A stretch of 58,521 nucleotides of DNA, the filler included, from Bipalium vagum (lineage: Eukaryota): assembly GCA_037834085.1 (NCBI GenBank). It is 3 parts of 3 records of this genome, joined end to end, with 100 filler letters (N's around TTAATTAATTAA, not from the genome) between each part and the next. Parts side by side here need not be neighbours in the genome. Positions count along the whole stretch, not along the records: positions 19,903 to 42,214 come from JBBMKC010223343.1; 2 more parts are not named here. The stretch is one strand, 5' to 3'. The translations under genes and the position numbers were made by a program. Shown here piece after piece: positions 2,640 through 42,214 of this stretch; positions within the stretch are counted from its first letter, which is position 1; each line of letters starts with the position of its first letter. Under the pieces are notes generated by a model. The model did not search any database, had not been told where the DNA came from, and saw nothing but the letters and a program-made list of their open reading frames with translations.

Positions 2640-5600
2640 CTTTTACTATTAGATTGACTGTTTTATAAAAAACTTCATTTTTTAAAACTAAACTGCATCG
2701 ATATTCTCCTGCATCTGTTTCTTTCACTGGGTCGATTAATAAATTAAACTTTTCTGTATTAAATATTCCTTGAAAATTGATACGAAATCTTGGATCTGGA
2801 GTCACACGGTAAAATCCTCTGGTTAATAGACGCCTAGGATATTTCATCCATGTTACATTGGAGTAATCCTAGTATTGAGAGAAATCTTATTAAGAATTTA
2901 ATTAAAATTAACCTTTTTTAAGTTTAGATATATTTTCAAGATAAAATTAAATTTTTTTAATTTTAGAAATATTTTAAGGTAAAATTAAAATAAGCTAATG
3001 TTTTGTTTATATTCAATAGAAAAAATTTTATTAAAATAATATTTTTAATAAATATCTTATTAAAATATTTGTTTAACACAATTAATAAAATCAGAAGACT
3101 TACTGCCAGACTCAGTTTTGCATTTATGATACATTTCAATTCGACTGTTTTATTGTTTACTTCATTTATTGTCTCAGTTTTATTTATAAAATAAAAGTCG
3201 CTTGAGGATGAAGTTTTAAATTCTGAAAGAAATTTCAATTGATAAAGTGAAATAAAAATAAAATCAATAAATTTATACAAATCCATAATAATATTTTTGA
3301 AATGATCATTTTGTCTGAGATATGAAAGTTTTTGATCTAGGACATTTGGCTTAGACTCAGCTGTTGAGCAGGCCATAAGCAAACTTTGAATTAATAATTT
3401 TATTTCTTTATATCAGAAAATTTATGGAAAAATTATTTAATAAAACATTATTAAGAAAATGAATTACTGCGATATAATATATTTTCAAAAATTCTTTTTA
3501 TATTCTCTAAATTTATTACAATAAAATAAAATAAATAAAAACTATGATTGTACTGCAGTTAATTTTCAAAATCTAATTTCAAAGAATTAATATGAAATTA
3601 TCTTATAAAAAATCTTTAGAATAATAATTTAAAAATAATTACTATAAAAAGTTTAGGATAAACAGGCCATTTTTAATTAAATAAAAGAATTAATTAAAAA
3701 TATAAATTGAATTTAAAAACAACAAATTTATAATTAAGTTCTCATTGATTGACAAAAGTTTTCTTGTAATACAAGTTTTTTTTAATACTTACATAAAATC
3801 ATTATAAAACATTGAAATCATCAAGGTAGTATCTAAGAAAAAAATAATATTCATAGTTCAAAAGCCATTAAAATATCTGAAATATTGTTTAGATACAAAA
3901 TAATTAATATACAGGATTTTCGATAAAAATATAGAACGTTAATAGGCAAAACACGAAGTGATTCCAACAATGCTGTTTTTCAGTCATATTTTGAACCCAT
4001 TACTAATATTAAATAATTCAAACTTGATTAATCTATTTTATTGATAAATTATCCTACTTAAAAAATAATTTCTCAAATAAGCTTCTTTTGAAATAACTCT
4101 GAATATGTTTCGGATTCATCTCGACAACCTGTAAAAAATATTTCAATAATGAAAATAAAATTTGCCGTTGAATTTGGATATGGTAACTGACACAAAACAT
4201 CGTTTCATTTATTGGTGTACAACATTAAAAAAAATAAAAATAAATTCAAGTTTTTATCAAATAAAATACGTATGATAATCAATGAAAAGTAAATAATAAT
4301 TAAGGTAAAATTATCTTTTTTACAGTCAATAAGATCAATAATTATATATTTTTAAATTAATACACAAAATAGTTATGATTATGAACAAGAAAATTCAAAT
4401 AAGAGGCAAAGATCTGCGATTGTTTCAGTTATACCAGGCGAATCTAATATATACTGACTCTGTCATCAATTTAACTAGAAGAAATTTTATGAACTAATAA
4501 CTTGTTCAGATACCCATTCAGTCATCGTGTATGATTTCAGGAAAAGAAATTTTAATTCGACCTTTTTATTGAATCTTGTTTGCAGTCATATCTTACTTGA
4601 CTTTGCAAAAAATTTTTAAATATTATTAAGAAAGAGACAATACGGTAACAGATACTAAGCCTGGAATTCTTCAAAATTCAATTTTATTACCATGTGTACG
4701 ATAATTATCTACAATCAATATAAGAGCTTAATCCCTATTTCGTCACACTTGTCTTTTATCTCAGTTAGACCAACTTGGAAATTTTCTTCATTAACTGCAC
4801 AATCATGTAACGATTTATATCTGTTCACACCAACTACTAGGTAAATGTTTTGGTTTCTTACTTATGGAAATACTACTTTGTTATATTTATATTTTAAATT
4901 CAAATTCATCTAAAAATATAAATAATTCAATTAAAGTATTTTGCTCAAATTTATGAAACTCTTGAGAATACTTGAATCTTGATTCACTTATAAGATCAGT
5001 GTTTCTGGTACTCGAATAATACTGATTTTACCAGATATAATAGTGACTTAATTGGTTGTAACTCTTACTTGAGAACTGACTAAATCAAATACAATAATGA
5101 CCCAACCAATGGCAATAATGAATTAATAGATCGAAATAACTGTAGGTCAGGCAAAAAATGAGGAGCCTCTTTCCAACCAATCATAAGATAAAGTTATAAA
5201 AATTATAAAAATTTGAAATATAATATTATTTAGACTGATTACTATCATTGTTAAAGTTATAGATAATTTCTCTGAAAATTTTTAACTATTAAATAGTTTT
5301 ATATAAAAATAAATGCTAAAAAAATTCACAAATGTTAAGGTCTCAAAAATAAAAAGAAATCAATCTTAAGTTTAATTATTAATTTATTAACCATTAAAAT
5401 CCAATAACAAAATCTTTCTGGTGAAAAGATTAACATTCAAAAATATAATTTTAATAAATATTTATATTGGAAAAATGTTTCTAGAAATAATGAAAAATAG
5501 GAACATTATATTTATTCAAATAATTACCTTTCCAGAATTTATATATATTCTTAATAATCATTAATAGAAAAAATATTATTATTTGTTACAGTTATTAAGA

Positions 5601-21952: not shown

Positions 21953-24099
21953 TCAACCGTAAAACAGCCATGCGATCGGGTATCGAATGACGAAAGCTGT
22001 CACTGTGCAAAACACCTGAAAAAATAAAGAATGCAATGAGAGAGATATGCGAAAGATTACAAATGTAATGAGACAGCTATGATGGAACAAGGAACAGAAG
22101 AAAGGTGAGATGTTAAAAAATCGTTCGTTACTTGGAAACCGAGTAGGTTTTTAGTCAGAATCGATTCGTGTTCATCGCCAAAAATGAGGAGCCACAGATT
22201 GATGATTGTCAGATTATTGATCTCAATAAACCCATCCTCGTGATATGTGACTCTGATCAATCGCAGCGACTTCAGCACCATGAAAGAGACCTTACCCAGT
22301 ACATTCACCGATTCAAGTTTGAACTTGGTTGTCGACGTGCTGACTTTGTTTGTCGATGGAACAAAGCTAAAACCATTATAAGGTGAAGGTTACACGTCGC
22401 ACAGTTTTACAATCAATGGGGATATCGATTCGGAAATTCATTCACATTACTTTGAGAAGATTATACAAATTATCAAAAGAAATACCGATAATGATTTTTA
22501 TTTTAAAATTTTCAATTAATTTTTCAATATTACTATTTATTGGTTAAATTTTAAAATACTTTTTAATAATAACTATAAATAATGAAAAAACGATTTTTAA
22601 TAAAATTTATTTGTAAAACTTTTCTTTAATTATTATATTTTGATTTTATCACATTTTCGTCATCTGTTTTTAGTTGTCTTTCTTTATAGTAAATTGTGTG
22701 AATGAGTTACCAATAACAACGTAAATTTCGAAGTCAAAAAAAGATATCGATTTTCAATCAATCGATAAAAAATAAAAACAAACCGAGGTAATCGATGACG
22801 AGGACATGGTAGGAAGTGAAACAGTTGCGGAATAGAATAGATGAAATTGATTATCTGCGGAATGAAGAACAGAAGAAGCGTTTTGCTGAAATGTCCCAAA
22901 ATGCCGACGACAGCAAAAGTCATTCCGGAAAAATAGCAAAACGTGTCGCCAACGAACGCTTCCGCCGGATACCTGTGGTGAATGAAATGAATTTTGATTC
23001 ATACCAAGCCAGACAAAATTAACCAATTGAATTTCAACAGCCCCATACACACGAAGCAGTAAGGGATCATGAAGAACAGTGAGAACGTGTGATATTGCAC
23101 CAGCACTCCTGCACGGAAATTGATCAATTAATCAATGGAAATTAATTTATCAAAAATCAAATAGAAATTTGAATCGATTTCGAACGGAATTAAATCCAAC
23201 TTTGTGAATCGATTTAAATATTTCATTTCAATTTCAATCAACGAAATTAAATTGATAAATATTAATACTCTTCTATTATTATTAATTATTCTTATACGGT
23301 TTAAAAGTAATCCACACGTACCGGAAACTATCTCAATTAAATTGAAACAGCAAATTGAAATCGCTATGACCATGCTTTGGCCGGCCTCAATTCCATTGAT
23401 CCCAGCGTATATATTAATGGCATTCGTGCAAAACACGGCCAACATCCCCATATAAAGGTAATACAAAAACCCAATATCGACAGCATTGCCGAAAAGATTC
23501 CTCACAATGACCGGTAAGACAATATATGTCGTTCCGTTGGTAATGTAATACACGATCAGTAGTGGCAAGGAAGCAATGGTTGGCAACAAAAGCTTATGTC
23601 GCCATTTTAGTTCTAAGACATCGTCCACAAATCCCAACAAAGTCATACAACAAATCGACAATAGCCCGGCCAAATGTTGGATGAACTAAAAAGTAACCTG
23701 TTACCATAGTCAATATTAGTTAAATAATTACATCGGTTTTGGGAAATTCTTCAGAATACATCAGATATTGACGATTCGATATTGGCATGAACAGGAACAT
23801 TATAATAAAATAGGTGACACCACACCAAAGACCTTGTGCTTCGGGACTTAAATTGACGAAACACACATATATATATCGACTAGATGTCACTAATAATCTT
23901 ACATTTTTGCTGAAGATAATTTATTAAGATCTTTTCCTGACAAATTTGTCTTCGACTCATTCAGAAACATGTAAGCACAGCTTTTGATCAATCGCTTCAC
24001 CAAAACATACCCAATATATGACATAAGGCATAGTACAGAAATGTTAACAAACCAATCTTTAAATTTTTCAAAACAGAATTTATTGTAACACTTATCCAT
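21953..24099 (-). CDS. DPAGT1: UDP-GlcNAc:dolichyl-phosphate GlcNAc-1-phosphotransferase (ALG7/GPT)
   Basis: Seven phase-consistent exons: 24099-23903, 23846-23732, 23685-23322, 23108-23024, 22972-22784, 22366-22132, 22015-21953 = 415 aa. Motifs [71 protein letters not shown]. Confidence 0.97.
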
Positions 24100-25233: not shown

Positions 25234-28200
25234 TCAAGAAATAATCATTTCGTTCCCTTGCACCGCTGACGACAGCTGACCGTTGTTGCCGCCACCGTTA
25301 TTGTCCTTTTCACAGAAGCTCAAATCGTTAAAGGTCAAAAACGATTTGCATTTCCGAATGTTTGCTGCAGCTGTGTCGGAGGAGCTATGTACGTTTTCCT
25401 GGTTCTGGGGATGGTCGTCTAGCTGCTGCTGCTGTCGGTCCTGTTGTTGCTCGTCGTCGTGATTACTGAGCAGGTGTAGCACTCCGGAAATCGATTGTGC
25501 CACCGTTTGGTCAAGAACGGTGGAAATCACTAAATTGAGCATCCTGACCTCGTGGTCTCGACTGAAACGGCCCCGGTTCACCGAGTGACTGGCAATTCGG
25601 TTCAGCAGCGCCCCAGACTGTCTGAGGAATTCCAGACTCGTTCCCATCAGCTCCGGTCGTGCCTGTAACGCTTCCATGCCCATCGTGTCGACAACCTGGC
25701 GAATCTGCGATTCCGTCGTTTCAATGAAGCTGATCAGGCCGTTGATGACATTGGGCCGAGCGCTGGCCAGGTAGAGGCAACCGATCCCGTTTTCGCCACC
25801 CATCGACAGGTAGTGCATGACGGCCAGCGACATCTCCCTGACAACTTGCTGGTCAGAGTAACAAAAAGACGAGGTCAGGTAATCAAACAGGTCACGAATG
25901 ACAGAGTCACATCGATCCCCTTTGTGGTCATTATTGGTGTGAGACGTTAAAATAAAATCGATATTTTTCTCGTGAACACATAGTCTCATGATGCTCTCCA
26001 GCGCCAATCGACGACAGCCCAAAAATCGATGATTTGGTGAGAGAGCGTCTTCGGCTGCTGCTGAATCTGGGCATGTTAGCCAATGGAGCAATCCTTCAAT
26101 GATTGGTCGAACGATGGCGTCGTGGTACTTGCTCAATTCCAAATATGACGAAATGTTGACCAGTGTGACGAAAACGTGTTCTCGAATATCATCGATCCAC
26201 CTCAACCACCAATAATCATTGATGTTAATGATATTTAACGATTGCTGCTGTTTATGCCGCCGCCTCCATTCATCATTATCGGTGCCATGCTCGTGACCTA
26301 GCAACAATAATCGTCCAAGAATCACCAAGGTCGTTCGATTGGAACCGATAATTCGATCGTTCCCATTTAAAAAACTCAAATTCCTTATGGCATTCGACAC
26401 GCAGATGCATCGCAACATTTTCTCTTCGTCCGATTCGTTGATTTTGAAAAACAGTGTTTCACTGTCATCGATTGATTCTGATTTGGCACCGCCTCCTATC
26501 ACTCGATAACGATTGTTGTTGTTGTTATCGTCGTTGTCGATACTCCTCTTTCTCCTAGTCCTACTTTTTCTTACTGATGTTGCTGTTATCGTTTTTCTTC
26601 TATCAACAATTTTTCCGTGAGGGAGTTTATAATTTATTATGACTTGATGGTGATTATCATCAAATTGCACCGGATTGGAAGATGGAGACGGAGAAGGAGG
26701 ACGATAATGAATCGTTAACGAAGACGGAGACCCATCAGGAGATGTACATCGCGGCCGATCACTGAACGAGTTATGATCCGGTGTGGGATGACCGTTGCTC
26801 TTTTCTTCTTCACCATCATCAGTATCGCCTTCGAAGTTTTCGTCGACATCGTCCTGGACGACAGAAATGTCAAAAACATTTTCTAACTCAAAAACCCATT
26901 CTTTATTGATTTTTTTATTTTGTGACATAAGCGGCGGTAAAATATGAAAACTGGAATCAGCTCCACCGAAATCCAAAAGACTACTCAAATTAGTCGTTGT
27001 CGGTGGTATTTTCAATTTTGACGAAGATTTGTTGTCATCATCAAAATAATTCTCATTGTTTCTTTTTCCGGTACCGTTACTATTAGTTTTATCGAGAACT
27101 GAACACGACGAAGAATCACAGCACATTTTGATAATAAAATTCGTCAAATCAAAATCGCCTTCAAGAGCGTATTCCAATTTCGGATTCAAATCCAGCTTGA
27201 CAGTGAGGCCCGATCGATTGATACTGTATTTTGCGCCGTGCAATAAATTTACGATTTTGTCTTGAGCACAATAAAAATCATCATCTTCTACGGTTTTCGT
27301 GTTAATAATTTTTGATCGACCGATCGATTCTCCGCCGCTTCCGCTACCGCCACAATCGTGTTTCAATTGAAATCTTTTCAATACTGTTTCGATTTTAATA
27401 ATTTTGGCTTTAATTTGCGCATTGTTGACCGAATTTTGATCGAGTAGTACTGGAAGTTCCAAATCGTCAATGAACATATCGCGACCGAAAATGCTGCCGA
27501 GACTGTTTCGCCAGATGTCCACAAGAGACTGAAACATGGGCATCAGATTCTTTAGGTTCAGCTTTTCCAAATAGGCATCGTCTTTTGTCCAAATATTCAA
27601 ATAGTTTAGTGCCCAACTGACCTCGGCAACCAGTCCCGATTTCAGAGCCATAGTAATGGTATTTGGATTAAATGCTTCTAAAAATGGAATTTCGGAAAAA
27701 TTATTTTTAAAAAAAGAGGGCAATCTCACTGATATCTTTGGAAACGTACTTTCTTTTTCGACTGTAATCAGGCTGCGTTGCTTCAACGGAATCAGATGGA
27801 AACAAACTGTCGAATCGTTTTAACCCGTTCAGGTTGCATTTCTAAAATAAATGTGGAAAATAGACAAAGTAAACAAAAAATTATAAATAACATTTCTAAT
27901 AAAAATTAAATATTGATTTTTAATATCAATTAATTTTTAAATTATTTATAATTAAATTATATTATTCAATATTATATCGATTTCCTCTGTATTTTATGAA
28001 TTGATTTCCAGACTCAATTTCTTGATTAATGATTCACAATTTTTCTTTAATTATAAAAAAGTTCTTTATTAGTACACAAAATTCATTTTCATTCATGCAC
28101 GTCTTTCCTTTCTTTATAACTAGCGGTGTGATCCAGTCTTCTTTTCTACATTTTTTGGAATGATTGCTTTTACTTCTTTATCATCTTTTCAATTTTCATA

Positions 28201-31200
28201 TATACCATTCTTAGCTTTCTTCTAATCTCATTCAACTCGATGTCAATATTCACAAGTCCGATGTGAATGACGAAAAAATCAAAACATACTCATAAATGGG
28301 AATTGTTTCAAGATTTTTCAAAAATTACCGATTTGAAAATGACTGGGGATAACATAAATTATTGAAAAGAATTAAACATTATAGTAGACCATGTGGATTT
28401 TTTAAACTTTAATTTATATTTTAAATTACAAATAAGTAACAAATCAATCAATAAATTCAGCGAAAAAAGTTAATAATGTAAATCAATAATTTTAATTAAG
28501 TTAAAAGACATTATGTCATAAAAATGTGTTTAACTTATTTTGGTACTTAAAATGCCTGATGGGTTACTTTTTAAATATTCTTTTAACACTTTTGGTAATT
28601 TGTTATTTAACTGTAAGATCAGTTTTAGTGTTTTATTTTAAGATTAAGTTTATTAATTATAAATAAGATTGTAATGACGTTTTGAAAAACACATGTAAAA
28701 GAACAAAATGATCTGTCTCAGGGTCATAGATAGCTCTTGAAAGTTTACGGTGCAATAAAACTATTTTAATTTGGAAAATATTTTGCAACATTTTCATTAT
28801 TCTAGATTAAGGAATTTTAAAAAATTTAATTTGATTTTAAATTATAATTTTAAAAAATCCATAAATGCAACAGTTAAATCAAAATAGATTTCCAATTTTA
28901 CTTTTTTATAATACTCTAAAATCATAAAATAATGCCTACTTCTTTAATAAAACATCATCATCTTTAAGTAATTATTCAGAATATTCAAGAAATTATTAAA
29001 AATATAATATAAAAGTAAGATTTATTAACCATATGTATATATCATTCAAACTTTTTCTGAAAAGTCCGATTCAGAGTTAACAGTTAAGTATTGAATTCTA
29101 TCAGTTAAGAAAGATGACTTTTCAAGATAAGTTGCCCATAAGATTGGTTCATTAATAATAAAAACGTCTGGATAATCACCACAAAAGCTAAATTAAAACT
29201 TTTTTTTGTTTAGATCCCAGTCTAATAAATCCTATATTTCATCAAGTCATTTTCCCATTACCTCAAAAAAAGTGTTTGATCTTTCCAGAACTAATTACTT
29301 CCTTATCAAGAGAATTTATCCATTTATAAGAAATCATTTTTAAACGGTACTTTAAACATTTAAATCAGTAAGTATCATCATGATTTTTCCTTTTCCATAA
29401 AACATATGTTGCTTGATAGTGAAAGTTCTTAACATAACCTTATTTAACCATCATTTGAAGACTTTTCGATCGATCATGAAGTTGTTAGCCTTTTCCTAAT
29501 GCTTTTATTAATTTTATACTCGGATATAGCTTTAATTTTGTATGATTTTTTATATTTTATTTAAAAGGATAAAACAATAGTTCAATAAGTAAACATTTCA
29601 TATTTACATAATTTTTGATTATGGGCGTTTCTTAAAAATTTTCACAAATTAATAGTCTCTTAATAAAACCCCCACAGTCTATTTCTCATGCTGGAGAAAC
29701 GAAGACGCGTGAGACATCATTTCAAATTTTATGGTACTTTACCATACTTGGACTATGGTTTATTTTATTAAATTAATTTAAATTTTAAAAAAACTTATAA
29801 ATTAGACATTTAAATCAATTTTTTACCCCCACATTAAAAAAAAGAAATCTTTTAAGCAAGATACTGATTTCTGAAGTTTTTCTCAGGTTAAAAAATAGAC
29901 CTAGAACTACAGAACCTTTTTCTTTAGGTAGTTCTGTTCTATTTAAGAAAAAGGATAAAACTATCAAGATACTTGAGAAATATAGATATAAAGCAATATC
30001 ATCGATAGAAACAGTTTGAAAATGGATTAGAATTACAATTCAAAAGTTTAGATTTTAGCTTTAGTTAAATCTCGTCCAAATTGTCTTTCCGCTTTCGATA
30101 AAAACATGTTACAGGAATGTGGACTCATTTAAAAAATCATAATTCATCAGTTGATACGATGTCTTTATTCTTGATTATTTGAAGAATTTCGCTAGAATTT
30201 AGACAAAAAATCTCCACTTGAAATAAATGAAAATGTATCTTTCCTAATGTGGAATATTGCAGGGAATGAGAAATTGGTCCATTATATATAAGATTGACAA
30301 GAAAAGTATTTTTGACTAGGACAGATTTGGAAAATTCATTAATAGCATTAAAAAATTATCTTCACCGAAAAAGTTACTAAGTGGTGGGATTTTAGAGGAA
30401 AAACCATTGTAAATAGCTGCCGCGCAACCAGACTTTCAGTTCTGAAATGTATTCCTCTCAGTGAATAGATCTCATAGCCGTCATTGATTTCATGCGACCG
30501 GGATTGATCAAATGGAGGTTGTTGATATGTATTATAATAATGCAAAACGGCAAATTTCATTGATATTGTACACCAAGATGTTCAGTGGTGTGATTTTTGA
30601 TCCTTATGACGGTTTACCCGACATACTCACCTGAACTTGAGCCCTTAGCTGATAAGCATATATTTTGATTTTTAAAATACTCAAGCAGAAGAGAAGTTGA
30701 TTCATTGGAAAAGACTATATCTAGATGACTTTTTCGACCATAGGTCAAAAATTTTGTATCAGTTAAGAATTTTTCATTTGTCTGACAAATGACAAATTGT
30801 AATTGAAGTATTTACATTTTTAATACTTTTCTCTGGAAACATTTTTGTCAAAATCCCGAGGATCTTCCTGACGACCATGTATAACATTATTTAAACAAGA
30901 TATTTTGTTAAAATGAAAAAAATTAAGATAAATTTCCCTTTAACAAAAGTTTTTGAATTTCAAATGACACCGAAATTTTTAACAAACAAGACCAAATAAT
31001 TTTTCTTTTGTAAAATATTTACCAGAGAACAAACTCACCGAATAGTTTATCGGCGTCACATACATGGGATTTAAGCGTGACGTTTCCATGTGAGATCGAT
31101 TGTGACATGTGCTGGTGAGCATTGAACTGGTCGAAGACGATCCCGACGATTTTGTTCCATTGAGATTGATGACTGATGGTTGATCACACAGATTGGCAGA

Positions 31201-34200
31201 GAGCGGCGGTTGTTGAAGAGAAGAATTTCGTGTAAGAGAAATTAAATTTGTTGACAGCGTTGGATTGGACGATCGTGGATGGTTGAATGAATTTGTAGAT
31301 GTCGTCTGATTCGAATAATTACAGTGAAGCATGGTGGAATGATTTCCGGGTCCGATTTGGGCGATGTTTGGAAGATTTGGTCTATTGGTTGTCTGAATAT
31401 TGGGAGGCGGTGGCGGTGGAGGCGGCATACCGCCGTAATTTGATTTCCAGTCAATTCTGCGAGAATGGTCTTGTAAACTTCCAACTGAATTATAAAAATT
31501 ATTATCTTATCAATTGATATTTTTGAATTAATATAATATATATTTATTTATATTAAAATTTTATAATATTAATAAATCTATCCTGATCATTTGAAAAATA
31601 AAGGCAATTAGTACCTGCCTCTAGTTTTCAAGCACTATCATAATCATTTTTTCATTAAAACTTATGGCTTAAATCACTAAAAACTGAGTCGACAAAGATT
31701 CTTTATTATTGAAATGTTTATATCACTCTAAGAACTGGGAAATGAACAAAATAAATTATTTTTCTTTATAGCCTTTGCTCGGATTATTTTCACCTGGTAA
31801 CCACTAAAGATGTTATTTTTATGATATCGTAGCAATGTCGAGGTAATCATTTTGCTGCATTTCTTGAATTTCTTCATTGAAAATTGAATATTTGTTGATT
31901 GTAACTATTCTGATTTCTATTTTAACTGTGTGCGTGTGTCAGTATTTCAAAGTACACAATAAATTTGTTTCAACTTTATTTTTTATTTTTATTGATTGAC
32001 AACACTGTAGGAAATAAATTCTTTATTTTCAGATAAATAATAATTTCAATAAATTCGAAAATTGATCAAGCCTTCTTCAGCAAAAATTTATTTTGTTAAA
32101 CGATTTCCTATAAATTTATATTTAATCCTGAAAAGGCTGAGTTTAAATGCTTTTTTGTGCCAAAAACCGATAACAGTCAATTTTTTGTTAAGAAATAATT
32201 CCGTGATCTCTTTCAAAGAATCAACATTTGACTCTACTGAACCTTTCCTTTAACTTAAACTATTACTGTTTATAAATCCGCCTCATGTGTTTTTTACAAA
32301 TTTGGTCGGCTTTTATTAAAAATTATAAAAATTTTAAAATAATAATCATACTAATATTAATAATAAAATTTTAAAATTTATATATATTTATATGCACACA
32401 ATACATGCAGAAAACGGACAAGTAATAAAATAACGAAAACCAAACGACGATCACAAGACGGCTACACACACTGATAGACAGACAGACAGACCGACAAGAC
32501 TACTTTTTTCTGCTGTTCTACTGGACTTACTGGGATAATATGTAGAAGTGGAATGCGGTGAAGCGACATTGCTGTTGTTGTTGGAAACGACATGGTGGGG
32601 GCTATTATGCTGGGACAGTGCACCGTTAGGGGAATAAATGTAATTCGGCGTTGGCGGATAGTAGGACGGAGGAAATGAGACGGAATTGTGGCCCGGCTGT
32701 CTATAGGACGAGCTATATTGTCGTGAGTATGAGAAGCAAGGATACTGGACAGGCGGATGGTAATATTGACCGTTGTTGTTGCTGATATTTGGTGGTGTCA
32801 TATTTTTGTAGTCGCATGGCAACAGTTCCTGACCGGCAGAAAATTCGATTAGGGAACCATTATTGCTATAATGAGAGAACGACGAGGACGTTGTCATCGT
32901 TGTTGTTGTTGATGATAACGACGATGATGATGACATCGATGATGACGATGGTAGATAATCGATTTTAGTGGAACCGAGTTCAGATTTATCAGCTTCTTTA
33001 ACACTACCAACCGCCAAATTATCAGATTTTTTAATCACTTTTTCAGAATTGTTACACCGACCCCCACCTCCACCAACACAACTGCTGCCGCTGCTGCCAC
33101 CTCCTCCACCACCGCCACCACCAAAATTAGAAACATCCGGTTTAGAAACATCTTTCGAACTCATCTCAAAACTATCGGGAGCTGTTTAAAAAAAATTACC
33201 AAAACAAAAAAATCGTAAATTATTGAATTTTAAAATAAATAGAAATAAACAAATTTTCGAAACTCACCCGGTGGTTGAGATTGTTGGGACAGAATAGAAA
33301 TATTATTGCTGCTGATGCTGTTGGTGTTCTGAGTACACCCAGGAGATATTGATCTTTGGCTGGGATGCGTTGAACAACAACTGGAATTTGAATTCGAGCT
33401 CGAACCGGGATTGTGAGGCCACTGGTGCTGCTGTTGCTGTTGATTCATTGGTGATATTGATTTATTCCAATTTTGTGGAATATTTGTCGCAGTCTCAAAC
33501 CGGGCATGGGGATGCATCGAATTCACTGGAGGAGGAGAACTGAAACCCATCATCCTCGGTCCTGTCGCACCATACGGACCACCACCACCGCCGCCGGGAA
33601 AGGGATTGTGGGCCCGTTGTTGTCCTTGGTAATGATGCATTTGGCCTCTTTGAATTATCTGTCCATTGTGAATGGCACTGTGGTGCTGGTGCGGATGCTG
33701 CTGCTGGGGATGGTTGTGTGGGTGATGTGGGTGAGGGTGATTGTAAGGACTATGCCCGTGGAACAGGTTCGGAGTATTGAAATCGGGATGTGGAGGGGGC
33801 CTGGGTGTTGATGACGTGCTGCTGCTGTATTCGGAATTGTGATGCGACGATATTGTAGAGGTCGGAGAGGACCCAGCGTTTCGGGAAGTGCTTTTCTTTT
33901 TCTTGTCTGACAAGCTTTGTATTTCTTGCAAAATCGGTCCTGGGTCGATGCCGTTGCGATCAAATTTGCACTCGTAATCCAAAAGACACTTGATATAATT
34001 TCTTCGCAAGGTGTAAGCTCCCGATGCCGAAGCATTGACATTCACGATCAGACATATTTCTTTCCAACGTTTCGTTTTCACGACGTTCAACAGACCCCCG
34101 CGCTCGCGAACTGCGTGATACAATCGAAACAGATCCAGAGGTTGCTTGACAACAGTTGGCACAGCGCTTAACGGTGTGTTGTTTTCATCCATGAAACGTA

Positions 34201-37200
34201 AGTATCTCTCGATCCACGGTTCTCGGTCGGGTTCGTTTCCCAGCTCCATCAGTTTTTGAAAACAATTACTGTTGGACTGAGACTCGCTGTTTTGGTGATA
34301 TTGACGATGTGGTGGGATTGTGTTCGGATTGACGTTAAAAGATTTGGGAGACTGTGGAGGCAAATGGGTGGAGAAAGAGTTCATCATACTGTGAGGAGGA
34401 CCTTGGTTGCCTGGATACGATTGTGGATAGACCATTGAGTGAGGCTGAGACATTTGTGGCGTAACTGGATATTGACTCAGGTGAGTTTGATTTGGAATCG
34501 AATTGTGATTCATAACGTTACTTTCACTGGGACCCAAGCTACTGACACTGTCCTCATTTTCATCGATCATAGAACTCATGCTTGTCTGTGACGGGGACGG
34601 GATTGTGTTACTCACAGGCGTTGGAGGATGACTTTCGTTCTGAAAACAAATAATTATCGATATTTGATATAAATAGTTATCAATATTTAAATCAATAACT
34701 CAATAAAAATATTAATTAGATAAATTTCTTCTCAATTATCCGAAAGCATAATGTTATTATAATAAAAAAACTTTAAATTAAGTTTTATTATGTCAATGTA
34801 ATCCAAAGATTAATTTGATTAAACATTTCCCTCTTAAAAACCCCATGTTTTAATATTGAAAAAAATTATAAATATTTTACGGGAGGTAAATATGAGAAAT
34901 GTGTCCAATATTAAAAAGGTTTTCTGAAAAAATTTTAATTGACATGTTATTTCACTGAAGTTACAACACAGCACAATGTCAATTAAACACATTTGGTATT
35001 CTAGAATTATTGTCAAAAATAAAACTCAACTATTTTATATTGTTAAAGAAGACTGAAAATAATTTATTTTATTTAATCTTCTAAAAACTTAATTTTAAAC
35101 AATTTAATAAATCGATCAAGTTATTGATTAATTAATAATTAAATCAATTCAAATTTTTATTTCTCTTATAATAGTACTAAATTATTTTTAACCTATAAAT
35201 TTGGTGATTAATAAGTAAATCATTTTTTTATTTCTGCCTTTTTTTATTTTTTTATTTATTTATTATTATTATTATTTTGTCGAAAATTTTCTATTTTAAA
35301 ACATTCTCACAGACATTTCTGGGAATTGTTAAAAATATCAGTGTCTTATCAATCAAAAGTAATTCGAAATATTTCAACACTGAATAAAAATATTCAAAAA
35401 AATTAATTTCGCATTAACTTAATATTTTGTATTGTATATTTTTCAGAAATATGAAAACGTCAATGGATCGATAAAACACTTATATTGTTGAAATCTTTTT
35501 CAATCAATACAACCAAAAACAGAAAATTATTTCCGTTGAGAAAATTTTTTCCAGATTTCATCATCTACACAGATTTAAATTTAATCGAACCAAAGACTAA
35601 ACTGAAATTGAATATTTTTGAAAAAAAAAATTAGAATAAAAAAGAATTTGATATTTATTTTTAATTATTCGATATTTAATCAATAATTTTCTCCCTCCAC
35701 TTTAATTCTTACAAGTTTCGATGTTGCACAATAATGGTAGGAGATATATTCAGAAATATTGTTTTACACTATTCTTATGATAATTTAATTGATCGATAAT
35801 TTCTTAAAGAATTGTTTACAAAATTTTTAAATTAAATTTTAACACAATTAATTTTTTTCCGATAATTAAATCGATAAATAATTAAAATTTAAATACGAAA
35901 ATCGATTATGTAAAACTTGATTTTCTCTCAGACTTTTTTATGATTTCTACTGAATTTATCGATTGCTTTTATTTGAACTTAGATGGAAATAGAATTATAA
36001 GATTTTATTTTTTGTCAAATAGAATCGAACTCGCACAGGAAAACGAATAGAGGTAGAAGATATGTGCTCGAAATACTTTCTAGAAATCGATTTTAAAACG
36101 GTGAATTATAATTTGAATAAAAAATTAAAAATAAATTATTCCTCCCTCTTTTAAATCAATATTTATTCAAATGTGTCGATCAATATTTGAATTCAAATAT
36201 GATAATAATAAGTCAGTTCACTAAAAGTCAGACAATGAACAATCGAGTTAAAAATATTTCCAAATAAATTTCAATTTTTTGTCCTGAACCGTCGCGACAG
36301 AGAAGGAAAAGCAAGCTGGCTATATTTAGACAAGTAGTAAAAATTGAGGTGGCTTATTTAGCTTCCAATGATAAACAAGTGAATAATGTAGATTTATTGA
36401 TTTTTATTATATAATATTAGTGATTCCAATTTAAAAATTTTGGTGGTGAAAGGGTTTTAAAAATCTAATTTCTGGTTTTTCGAAATTTCAATTTTTTAAG
36501 ACCATGTGTAAAAAAATTATTTTAATTAATCAATACTTAAACTAATAATTATTATTTAACGATTTTTTATTACCTTCTGAGTGGATTTCAATTTTGAAAC
36601 AGATGCTGAACGTGCGTTCACTGATTTGTTTGAATTGCTGCCGACACTGGACGTATCCTGGTTGATATTGGCTTCTTCTTCGTTAATTATAATGGTTAAT
36701 TATAAATAATGATTATGAAAAACCGTAATAAAATAATAAAATTATTGATAATTATTAATCAATAATAATTTATTTTTATCATTATAATAATAAATAAAAA
36801 TAATTTGATATCGATTACCACGTTACCTTTCCTGTCCGAAATTTCTTTCAGGGCTCTACTACTGTTCGGATGACGTGAACCCATAGATCCGTTCATGTAC
36901 ACATCGGGATTGGTACTAAATGAAGGATGTGAAGTTCCTCTTGGCACAAATGGACTGTGAACATTGAAGGATCGGCTTTGGTGCATCAGAACCGGTGGAC
37001 CACCCGGATACGTCCCATAACCCGGTCCCGGACTCGATGTTTGACTGTAATTTGGATAGTTCATCATTGGAGATCGGTTTACGTTACTGGGCATCATCGT
37101 GTTGTTTTGATTGATAAAATTGTGAACATTGGAGGACGACGAATTGTAGCGAAACTGTGACGGATGATTGTAATACGATGGATTTGGATGTTGCATCATC

Positions 37201-38234
37201 ATGGGATTGTAATTGGAGCTGTCATATCCCAACGATTGTGACAGTTGTTGTTGTTGTTGCTTCATTTGAGCTGAATTAAAGAGAGTTATTATCAAACTAT
37301 GCCCAGAATATGTCTGTTACATTGTTGATTGATTTTATTTTCATACACATTGTTATTAGATGGATTGTTTATGTCAGTTTTGTCTGTCAAATCTGCTGAA
37401 GTATTTAAATGAAAATTTGAATTAGCACTAGAATCTGGTTTCAATTCTATGGATTCTACTGAATTCAATTTGTCAGGCTTTATCTAAAAATTATAAAAGA
37501 AAATCGCAATGATATACGAATAAAATATGAAATAATTATAATGAAGTAAACAGTTTTAAATTTGAACTTTATTTAAACAAAAGCGAAAACTAATAATTAT
37601 TACTTCATCGTTTTTTATGGTATTATCGCTGTCATTTGAATCTAAAATATTGACCATTTCATTTTTAAATTTCCAATCAGGCATGTTTAATTTTGGTTTA
37701 TGGTCTTTTTGGTTTAGTTGATAATTTCTGTTTTCAAATTTATGCTTAGCATTGACTGGAAATTCACTAGTCATTTTATAATCAGAGCATTTCATTTTAT
37801 CAACTTTGGTTATATTATTTGGATTTGGTGGATAAATTTCATGATATTGTGAATAATACATCCGCTAAATAAATAAACTCATTACTCATTTCCATGTTAT
37901 CAAATGGGATACTTACGACAGACTCGCTCGGAGATCTCGATAAATTCCAATTAGTAGTATCATAATTTCGATAATTCCCATGATAATTCGTCGAAGCAAA
38001 AGGTCGTAAAGGTAAATTTGAATAAGGTCCATATTGATTGTTTTGCAACAGTTGATTAAGACATGACGATGGATTTTGATATTGATAACCTTGCTTTTCG
38101 TCATAATGACTGTAACTAGCAGGTGACAGTACTCCATGTTCAAGTGAATTTTCACTGATGTGGTGAACACTTTCCGATAGCATGCGATTTGGAGATTGCA
38201 AATTTGTTGTGGATCCAGAATTGGTATAATCCAT
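25234..38234 (-). CDS. ARID1: ARID1A/B (Osa/BAF250) SWI/SNF subunit
   Basis: Ten phase-consistent exons: 38234-37917, 37864-37604, 37483-37321, 37270-36827, 36677-36574, 34639-33268, 33181-32492, 31484-31039, 27841-27730, 27677-25234 (~2117 aa). ARID domain (EPDREPWIERYLRFM…PLDLFRLYHAVRERGG…WKEI…SGAYTLRRNY) and BAF250_C motifs (FPSDSVEATQP, MALKSGLVAEVSWAL, RCICVSNAIRNLSF, PELMGTS). Confidence 0.95.
30540..30680 (-). mobile_element. Possible Penelope-like GIY-YIG endonuclease remnant in ARID1 intron
   Basis: Reads GEYVG*TVIRIKNHTTEHLGV, resembling the PLE motif YVGxTxRxxxxRxxEHLG; short and interrupted. Confidence 0.4.
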
Positions 38235-40000: not shown

Positions 40001-40171
40001 ATTTTTTTAAATATTACCCAATAGTCTATTAGAAAATTTTTTACATTTTTATTAGATTTTTAAAAAAAAATTAGTCAATAAAAAATCACCCATAAATTAT
40101 TTTGATTTTAATTAAGTCAGAGAACCAAATAAGTAAAATTTATTTCAAGACAAATTCGTTGGATAAAATGT

Positions 40172-41326
40172 TTATTTTCCCTCAACAACTTCGGCTTTGG
40201 GATCACGGTAATCATAAGTATGAAGTCCTAGAGTATTTAACCAGACTAGCATAGACTTTTCCTCGTTCTCCGTCTTGAAAATATGTGAATAGACAAATCT
40301 CTCTCGAAATTCTTCAATTTGACTTTGATACAGAGTCCAATCGATCGGCTTGCGTTCAGCGTTGGCATATTTTTGATTGTAAGAATCGTAATTGACTCTA
40401 TCCAGCACCAGTCCGAGACCGGGAGCTTTTGGGATGTCGACCTAGAATCGATTCGAATTCAAAGTAAATTTTATATGAAAAATGTTAATTTATATTACTT
40501 TTGATAAAGTGAAAACTTTTTGGAAAATATCATCATCACAATATCCACGGACAACAGCCATTGTCAAGCCAATCATTTTTCGGATTTGATGGAGCATGAA
40601 TGATTGACCATTGATGACAATTGTCACGTATTCGCTTTCACCGATTAAAAAGGCCGGCTCACAAGAAAGACTGATCAAAAATCGTCGACAACTGGAATCG
40701 TTCGGCAAACGACCCGATGTGAAGTTATGGAAGTTGTGTGTTCCTTTAAAATTTGACAGGACTTTATTGATTTTATTAAAAATATCATCGGTCAGTCGGA
40801 ACGAATCAAATTCGCTTTCTTTCAACTCTTTAGGAGAAAATGCAAAACTTGGTGTTATGTAGCGATACGTTCGGTATTTACACAGGCCTTTGGCGTGGAA
40901 ACTTTTGGTTGTTCGGAAAACGTCCAAAATACGGATGTGGGACGGCAATTTTTCGTTCAATAGCTTTACGACATTATCACATTGAGGCAATTTGACGGAG
41001 CACACCTGTCCGATAGCTGATACGTTTTTGTCGGTTTTCGATGCTCTTTGAAAGCGCATTTTAGAAGGCTTCTTGAAATTTTCCTCATCAATGATTCCAG
41101 CGTCCAACATAGCTTGCAAAATGTCGCCTTCAATAGTCTGAAAGCCCTCATTACGTTGCATACCAAAATATCCAACTCCGGAATACATCATCATCATGGC
41201 GCACATCCGTTTTTTATGATTTGCGTCAGTTTTAGGTATTTTCGATTCAATTTTTTCTACATTTTCATCGGCTTTTCTTTTCAAAATATTATTTTCACAA
41301 ATTGGGCTGTTTTTCATTTCTGGCAT
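40172..41326 (-). CDS. PUS1: tRNA pseudouridine synthase 1 (TruA family)
   Basis: Exon 41326-40499, a 57-nt intron, then exon 40441-40172. Motifs YSGVGYFGMQRN, RASKTDKNVSA (catalytic Asp), GTHNFHNFT, GQSFMLHQIRKMIG, IPKAPGLGL. Confidence 0.95.
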
Positions 41327-41329
41327 TCT

Positions 41330-41563
41330 CTATAAATTAACTTTAGCTTCAATTGACTTTTTCAATGCTTTTGCTTCTGTATACAATTTACCTTCGATCA
41401 ATTTTTTCGGACGTATTTCTGTATAATACTTAAAGGCGCTAATTCCTAATTTACCAATCAACGAGCTAGTTCCTAAGATGATAAGTATTATTGATAATTT
41501 ATGTGATTTATCTAATATTTTTGAGGATATCGGCTTGTTATATTTCCGATTGAAAAATTCCAT
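41330..41563 (-). CDS. Small single-pass membrane protein, COX14-like (cytochrome c oxidase assembly factor)
   Basis: From ATG 41563: …SKILDKSHKLSIILIILGTSSLIGKLGISAFKYY… matches the D-x-x-H-(R/K) + transmembrane helix + aromatic/basic tail pattern I recall for Cox14. Length is 77 aa unspliced or 68 aa with a 62-nt intron. Pattern similarity only. Confidence 0.55.
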   Translation of the reverse strand: MEFFNRKYNKPISSKILDKSHKLSIILIILGTSSLIGKLGISAFKYYTEIRPKKLIEGKLYTEAKALKKSIEAKVNL

Positions 41564-42214
41564 AAAACGAAAAAATACTGATAGTGAAACCAAAAGGTAT
41601 ATTGATTACTTTATTACAAAAAAGTACGTACTTCAAAAAATTTTGATTATTAATAATATTTAAACAATTCTTCTAAATCTCTTTAAGATTTTTTATTAAA
41701 ATCTCATTTTTTAAACCTTTTTAAAAAATCATCTATAGAGCTCTCAGAATTTAAATATTCTGATTTTAATTATTACATCTATAAATTAATTATAGTTAAA
41801 CCAAAGATAAATATTAAAATATTAAAATTTACTATTATTTTCTAAAACTAATATTTTTTGTATTTTAATCAATCAAAAATTGGCCGAAATCAAGATACCT
41901 TTTTAAATCATTAAAGATTTTAATTAGAAACATTAATTAACCAAAATTAATTAATATTACGGTTGAAATTGAATATGAATACCTTTTTTCAAGGTTATTC
42001 TACTTGTTTTTTTGTAAAATAGTAAGTTTTAAAATTGTTCAATATTTAGGGTATCAAATTTAACCTAACTCTAAAAATCTTAGGTGGTGCAAAATCAAAA
42101 CAATCAGTAAAGCAACATGTGTATTTATACCACACCAAAATAAAATACAATACACTGAAATTCAAAAAGATAATGCACAAGCCTGGGATCACAATAAAAT
42201 GTCTGAAATGTTCC

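Follow-up and report, generated by a model that had tools for sequence, protein, structure and literature searches.

Known systems that resemble the locus reported here include uORF-encoded mitochondrial microproteins and delayed reinitiation of the GCN4/ATF4 type. They also include the bicistronic genes of green algae, in which a small first ORF is separated from the second by a short inter-ORF distance, and in which the addition of an ATG lowers the output of ORF 2 (PMC11291117). A further case comes from flatworms themselves, where an operon resolved by spliced-leader (SL) trans-splicing carries the gene for cytochrome b-c1 subunit 7, a small mitochondrial protein, upstream of the gene for enolase (PMC12582326).

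The locus lies within a 58,521-nucleotide stretch of Bipalium vagum DNA (assembly GCA_037834085.1), hereafter called the window, in the piece derived from record JBBMKC010223343.1 (positions 19,903 to 42,214). At this site, a short ORF assigned below to COX14 is followed almost immediately by the gene for PUS1. The COX14 protein, which is small, mitochondrial and spans the membrane once, assists the assembly of COX1. The comparisons presented here suggest that COX14 is probably the 5' cistron of an old and conserved COX14-PUS1 bicistronic unit, and that the PUS1 start is reached by scanning ribosomes. Such a bicistron appears to be undescribed, as no paper on it was found in the literature searched.

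Organization of the locus

All features of the window discussed here are located on the minus strand. The small ORF (41330..41563) opens with an ATG at 41563 and continues for 77 codons to a TAG stop at 41332-41330. Reading of the sequence places only the trinucleotide AGA (41327..41329) between this stop and the PUS1 ATG at 41326, and the coordinates of this arrangement agree with those of an earlier note on the same DNA. The first exon of PUS1 (40499..41326), which contains a further in-frame ATG at 41317, opens a 278-codon ORF that matches the Pfam family PseudoU_synth_1 (E 1.3e-10). It is followed by a 57-nt intron that begins with GTAATA and ends with TCTAG (40442..40498), and by a second exon that includes the stop codon (40172..40441). 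Two PUS1 transcript contigs from relatives (L002 and L003), which reach only downstream of the PUS1 ATG, are continuous across the intron site, and the frame of the full 365-aa model was checked by computational joining of both exons. The sole sequencing run that matches the stretch is genomic DNA; its contig is collinear and has the PUS1 intron in place. The closest matches of the PUS1 protein come from four assemblies (69-73% identity), and the best named matches are from cestodes and trematodes (~50%). In addition, relatives P0001 and P0002 share the MPEM at the start of PUS1.

From just past the COX14 ATG up to the PUS1 ATG (41327..41562), no ATG is present in any frame. The nearest ATG upstream belongs to a mini-ORF of three codons (MRF, stop; 41696..41707) located 132 nt before the COX14 ATG. 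A cluster of poly(A)-signal hexamers occurs at and after the PUS1 stop (40107..40176), comprising AATAAA at 40176 and 40144 and ATTAAA at 40112, whereas neither AATAAA nor ATTAAA occurs between 41615 and 40777, which extends ~550 nt past the COX14 stop. The presence of three hexamers at the PUS1 stop, with no canonical one near the COX14 stop, was counted in favour of a bicistronic reading. The piece has a G+C content of ~30%, and an Rfam search of its whole length gave no match.

Assignment of the small ORF to COX14

The earlier note had described the upstream ORF as COX14-like. Pfam COX14 (PF14880) is the sole match of the 77-codon ORF (E 3.4e-4), although its score of 20.8 bits falls below the family gathering cut-off of 25. 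The same family is the top Pfam match of the orthologue from L001, a contig from a free-living relative (E 0.006, 16.8 bits against the cut-off of 25). The description is upheld by a feature search of a language-model atlas, whose top three clusters were all COX14 (0.90, 0.89 and 0.87), and by the positional orthologue from the trematode Dicrocoelium dendriticum (P0133), which scores above the COX14 cut-off of 25 with 35.5 bits (E 8.7e-9). The window ORF also has the layout of the family, whose members are about 55-90 aa long with one central transmembrane helix. Specifically, the 77-aa protein carries a predicted single transmembrane helix at residues 23-41 (41441..41497), where its best 19-residue Kyte-Doolittle window has a mean of 1.99.

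A profile constructed from the ORFs of the window, L001 and two cestodes recovered 12 proteins, 77-87 aa in length, from one trematode and from cestodes. Their alignment spans the full length and brings the transmembrane helix and the KYY and Y-x-E-A motifs into register, and the position of the helix is identical in all 14 aligned orthologues. The window protein is linked to P0133 by alignment A4, by an hhalign match between the free-living pair and the neodermatan alignment (E 1.6e-4, ungapped across columns 5-68), and by identical genomic position. Judged by its own sequence alone, the window protein would be a borderline COX14; once positional orthology is added, its assignment as the flatworm COX14 orthologue appears solid.

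Some searches did not yield relatives. A word-index search with the window ORF as sole query found nothing, a HMMER scan of 1.84 billion representatives with a two-sequence profile gave no significant relative and only the spurious repeat protein P0121, and a PDB sequence search using the profile found nothing. Two metagenome scans, one with a protein pattern from A1 and the other with a degenerate PUS1 DNA pattern, were both empty. UniRef labels the cestode orthologues P0123, P0124 and P0132 as 'COX16'; the family evidence favours COX14, and a COX16 profile gave no match at E up to 1.

The small ORF also shows evidence of coding constraint. The PUS1 of L001, a Logan contig, is 70% identical to that of the window, and the contig also contains the last 59 codons of the small ORF, with 47% identity over 59 aa. 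Between the two sequences pN is 0.36 and pS is 0.72 (dN/dS ~0.2), which argues for purifying selection. Among pairs of cestode COX14 sequences dN is 0.09-0.25 and dS is saturated. Codon-level conservation, whose absence the earlier note had named as grounds for refutation, is seen between the window and L001 and among the cestodes. A separate feature of the neodermatan proteins is the C-terminal sequence K-E-K-R-E-K-E-L-G-L-R-D (last 12 columns, A4/A5), which is nearly invariant from cestodes to a trematode. Because third codon positions vary while the residues are near-invariant, this KELGLRD tail is probably under strong protein-level constraint. It lies outside the COX14 model, and the tail of the free-living relatives differs.

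Conservation of the gene pair in flatworms

All eight loci examined have COX14 directly 5' of PUS1 and on the strand of PUS1; they are the window, L001 (free-living), five cestode loci (L004, L005, L007, L008 and L009) and one trematode locus (L006). The linkage in related genomes that the earlier note had proposed to look for was thus found in every case, with stop-to-ATG spacers of 1-21 nt. The spacer measures 3 nt in the window and 1 nt in L001. It is 8 nt in both a hymenolepidid-like transcript (L004) and Mesocestoides corti (L007), 7 nt in the Hymenolepis weldensis genome (L005) and in two taeniid-like loci (L008 and L009), and 21 nt in D. dendriticum (L006). The COX14 stop codon is TAG in the window, L001, L005, L008 and L009, TAA in L004 and L007, and TGA also occurs among the loci. 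Other neighbours are not shared: in the cestodes the pair lies between an upstream DUF747 gene and a downstream zinc-finger gene, whereas an ARID1/BAF250 gene is found downstream in the window. Among the neighbours compared, only the COX14-PUS1 pair appears to have been kept, and to judge from these sequences its adjacency is old and tight. A COX14-like ORF was not found within 10 kb upstream of PUS1 in Pecten maximus, which is a weak negative from one species searched with a flatworm-trained profile. Schistosoma bovis PUS1 (P0024) could not be placed in the contig index.

Each of the eight loci has this ATG-free tract: when the intervals from the COX14 ATG to the PUS1 ATG are pooled, their 1919 nt contain not a single ATG, whatever the frame. 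For the pooled tracts, a dinucleotide shuffle predicts ~21 ATGs and synonymous resampling with the proteins kept predicts 4.9 (P 0.0015). For the window tract alone, the dinucleotide shuffle predicts 3.1 ATGs (P 0.013), and 10 of the 368 inter-ATG gaps on this strand of the AT-rich piece are at least 237 nt long. Because the window gap alone is only mildly unusual, the argument rests on the recurrence in eight loci, which are related to one another but come from lineages between which synonymous sites are saturated. Internal methionines are likewise lacking in 14 of 14 COX14 orthologues. Such a tract is what access to a second ORF by scanning demands, and it is a signature of leaky scanning or of delayed reinitiation, as scanning ribosomes could reach PUS1 across an intervening stretch that has no start codon. 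The leaky scanning suggested in the earlier note is consistent with this absence of ATGs.

Start contexts differ between lineages. In the window, the COX14 ATG has a T at position -3 and the PUS1 ATG has an A, and this order is reversed in the cestodes (A for COX14, T for PUS1). All five cestode loci also carry a 3-codon uORF (M-S-I/V/L, stop) that starts 14 nt and ends exactly 2 nt before the COX14 ATG (L004:6-17, L005:3665-3676, L007:3987-3998 or from 3984, L008:301-312 and L009:48-59). With so small a gap between this uORF and the COX14 AUG, a ribosome that reinitiates would probably miss COX14 and cross the ATG-free tract to PUS1. The uORF has no counterpart in the 60 nt that precede the trematode COX14 ATG or in the 144 nt that precede that of the window.

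Two cestode contigs bear on the idea, put forward in the earlier note, that one transcript encodes both proteins. Relative to the H. weldensis genome (L005), contig L004 forms six collinear blocks from which five introns (69-711 nt) are absent, and the PUS1 introns are likewise absent from L009 relative to the genomic L008. Both L004 and L009 run unbroken from upstream of COX14 into spliced PUS1. Neither contains a splice inside COX14 or a spliced leader at its 5' end, and the 5' ends match genomic sequence. Because these contigs lack the PUS1 introns and yet carry both ORFs, they show a mature bicistronic mRNA in two cestodes, although as short-read assemblies they could in principle merge overlapping transcript species. 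The idea of a shared transcript thus gains its support from relatives, and presumably the mature mRNA of B. vagum is bicistronic too. In L004, the TAA stop of COX14 shares bases with an AATAAA hexamer (L004:255-268). The loci of H. weldensis and M. corti and the taeniid-like loci lack this hexamer, so its occurrence in L004 is probably due to chance.

PUS1 N-termini and flanking genes

Neodermatan PUS1 proteins begin with a basic, presequence-like extension of 22-25 residues with at most one acidic residue (L004:268-345, L005:3926-4003, L007:4249-4317, L008:562-639, L009:309-383 and L006:6256-6327). A second in-frame ATG comes after this extension, and the two features together suggest dual mitochondrial and nuclear PUS1 isoforms. 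The PUS1 N-termini of the window and L001 are acidic and are without the basic extension. The deposited H. weldensis model places the PUS1 start at the second ATG (L005:4001); the ORF is open from 3926. The ATG at 3926 is 7 nt past the COX14 stop and is used by the transcript-derived protein P0005.

Downstream of PUS1 in the window, on the same strand, is a multi-exon ARID1/BAF250 (Osa-type SWI/SNF) gene at 25234-38234. It includes Q/N-rich exons (36759-38234), an ORF with the ARID domain (33230-34615) and an ORF with BAF250_C (25234-27786). Another minus-strand ORF carries a glycosyltransferase family 4 (DPAGT1-like) domain (23128-23673). The last ~190 bases of the piece (42028-42214) belong to a repeat of very high copy number in the source run, at which contigs break. 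The summed contig depth there is about 2e5-4.6e5, compared to ~24 in the gene region.

Proposed translation of PUS1 and alternative explanations

In the arrangement that we consider probable, one promoter upstream of 41563 would drive the transcript, which would be polyadenylated past the PUS1 stop at about 40176-40107. COX14 would be made by ribosomes that initiate at its AUG, whose context is weak. Those that bypass this AUG would scan ~237 nt without encountering another in any frame before they start at the AUG of PUS1, with its A at -3. Presumably, ribosomes are delivered to PUS1 by leaky scanning, or by reinitiation after a tiny uORF as in cestodes. Counted against scanning is the fact that the COX14 AUG contexts of relatives are not uniformly weak, as the A at -3 in cestodes illustrates. 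Moreover, leaky scanning leaves the persistently short spacer unexplained.

This spacer would be explained by coupled termination-reinitiation, whereby ribosomes that finish COX14 would restart at the PUS1 AUG 1-21 nt farther on. The two ORFs are close together in every one of the eight loci, with 7-8 nt from stop to start in each of the five cestodes, whereas leaky scanning itself does not require a short spacer. However, an ORF of 77-79 codons is long for efficient reinitiation in the absence of a tethering element, no conserved nucleotide motif precedes the stop, and the ATG-free tract would not be required, such that we regard this route as quite improbable. A TURBS-like RNA motif before the stop was specifically considered and rejected upon inspection by eye of the cestode and trematode junctions, because third positions vary freely across the invariant neodermatan C-terminus. 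An operon resolved by SL trans-splicing is also an unlikely explanation. In such an operon the genes would be co-transcribed, the PUS1 mRNA would be trans-spliced at the AG of the TAG (41330), and the bicistronic RNA would serve COX14 only. Flatworms are documented to have both SL trans-splicing and operons (PMC12582326), an acceptor-like TTTATAG lies immediately before AGAATG in the window, and the stop is also TAG in L001, L005, L008 and L009. Nevertheless, L004 and L007 have TAA stops and spacers without AG, and in L007 the final ~25 nt of COX14 contain no AG either. The combination of an AG acceptor and a 3'-end signal between the cistrons was not found: the window has an AG in its TAG stop, but none is present in the spacers of L004 and L007. 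There is no room for a COX14 3' end and no AATAAA or ATTAAA to form one, the ATG-free tract would be left unexplained, and the spliced cestode contigs cross the junction. Furthermore, the pair is absent from those parts of the text and supplements examined of a 24-species pan-flatworm SL/operon study. SL trans-splicing in this species may still coexist with scanning, as TTTATAG is a fair acceptor.

The remaining two alternatives concern the protein products. The earlier note had raised the prospect of TAG readthrough to give a membrane-anchored COX14-PUS1 fusion, and in the window the ORFs are indeed in frame with a 3-nt spacer. In addition, the PUS1 N-terminus of the free-living species lacks the presequence-like extension of the parasites. 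However, only the window and D. dendriticum have the two ORFs in a common frame, and the stop varies among TAG, TAA and TGA. Because the relative frame is not conserved (spacers of 1, 3, 7, 7, 7, 8, 8 and 21 nt), and with the stop codon also unconserved across the eight loci, such a fusion seems extremely unlikely. The same note had proposed a cis-spliced isoform in which a 62-nt intron (41330..41391) is removed. Its strings are present as described, with a candidate donor G/GTAAAT (first intron base 41391), a candidate acceptor TTTATAG, and a resulting frame that would end out of frame within PUS1 at a TGA (41297-41295) to yield a 68-aa protein. The length is near that of the real 57-nt PUS1 intron, and the GTAAAT string occurs in L001 too, which is explained by the conserved codons that it spans. 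Yet the interval encodes 20 conserved residues and, compared with L001, evolves like the rest of the protein (pN 0.32, pS 0.73 over the last 20 codons). The spliced tail in L001 would be a wholly different 4-residue peptide, unrelated to that of the window because the spacer lengths differ, and cestode mRNA contigs are unspliced at this interval. The intron was therefore rejected as the main form, the interval is read as coding sequence instead, and a cis-spliced product, itself very doubtful, would at most be a minor isoform.

Implications of a proposed COX14-PUS1 bicistron

Comparative support for the COX14-PUS1 bicistron appears solid at the level of sequence, and the mechanism of translation is a proposal. 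A broader reading, which we advance only tentatively, is that for hundreds of millions of years COX14 has existed only as a translated leader of PUS1 in triclad-like free-living flatworms, cestodes and trematodes. In that case, the split of ribosomes between COX14, a COX1-assembly factor, and PUS1, a tRNA pseudouridine synthase, would be set by start context, by the 3-codon uORF and by an obligatory AUG-free tract. If true, this would be a phylum-wide bicistronic gene that does not depend on SL in animals that have SL trans-splicing at hand. Few animal nuclear mRNAs are truly bicistronic for two ancient conserved proteins. Close gene pairs in flatworms are usually presumed to be SL-resolved operons; COX14-PUS1 looks different because a spacer of 1-21 nt and an ATG-free tract have persisted while synonymous divergence reached saturation.

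COX14 has a role in COX1 biogenesis, and the loss of human PUS1 impairs mitochondrial tRNA pseudouridylation. The locus might represent a compact case of translational coupling between two factors of mitochondrial gene expression. There is also value for annotation, as gene sets of flatworms omit the small cistron or give it a wrong name (COX16 in some UniRef entries) and the PUS1 start is placed too far downstream in one assembly.

Comparison with known systems

As a member of the COX14/C12orf62 family (PF14880), the window protein is typical in its length of 77 aa, its one central transmembrane helix, and a family profile that is the only or top hit. It differs in scoring under the cut-off, and the neodermatan members differ in carrying the invariant KELGLRD tail. 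The flatworm gene is also proposed to be a PUS1 leader that lacks its own transcription unit.

Operons resolved by SL trans-splicing in flatworms share with this locus a gene for a small mitochondrial protein just 5' of a gene for a housekeeping enzyme, on the same strand and co-transcribed. They differ in having an intergenic region, in which the first gene has its 3' end and the second its SL acceptor. In contrast, the COX14-PUS1 pair has a spacer of 1-21 nt, which in some relatives contains no AG, and an ATG-free tract.

The likeness to uORF-encoded mitochondrial microproteins and to delayed reinitiation of the GCN4/ATF4 type lies in the presence of a functional small protein in the leader of another gene, and in the cestode 3-codon uORF that terminates 2 nt before the COX14 AUG. 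Unlike those systems, the upstream cistron belongs to an ancient and otherwise free-standing family, and stress-dependent control is not known from the flatworm case.

The leaky-scanning bicistrons of green algae (PMC7896298, PMC11291117) likewise have a small ORF 1, often encoding a tiny membrane protein, and a very short inter-ORF distance. Translation of their ORF 2 depends on the absence of upstream ATGs and on the context of ORF 1, and the flatworm tract is also free of ATGs. In green algae, however, such bicistrons are a genome-wide habit, whereas the flatworm case is a single pair conserved across a phylum, in an animal lineage that has SL trans-splicing, and is known here from sequence comparison. 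By analogy, the gene arrangement would work like the green-algal bicistrons and the uORF-encoded microproteins, which it resembles, and the features by which an SL-resolved operon is defined do not match it.
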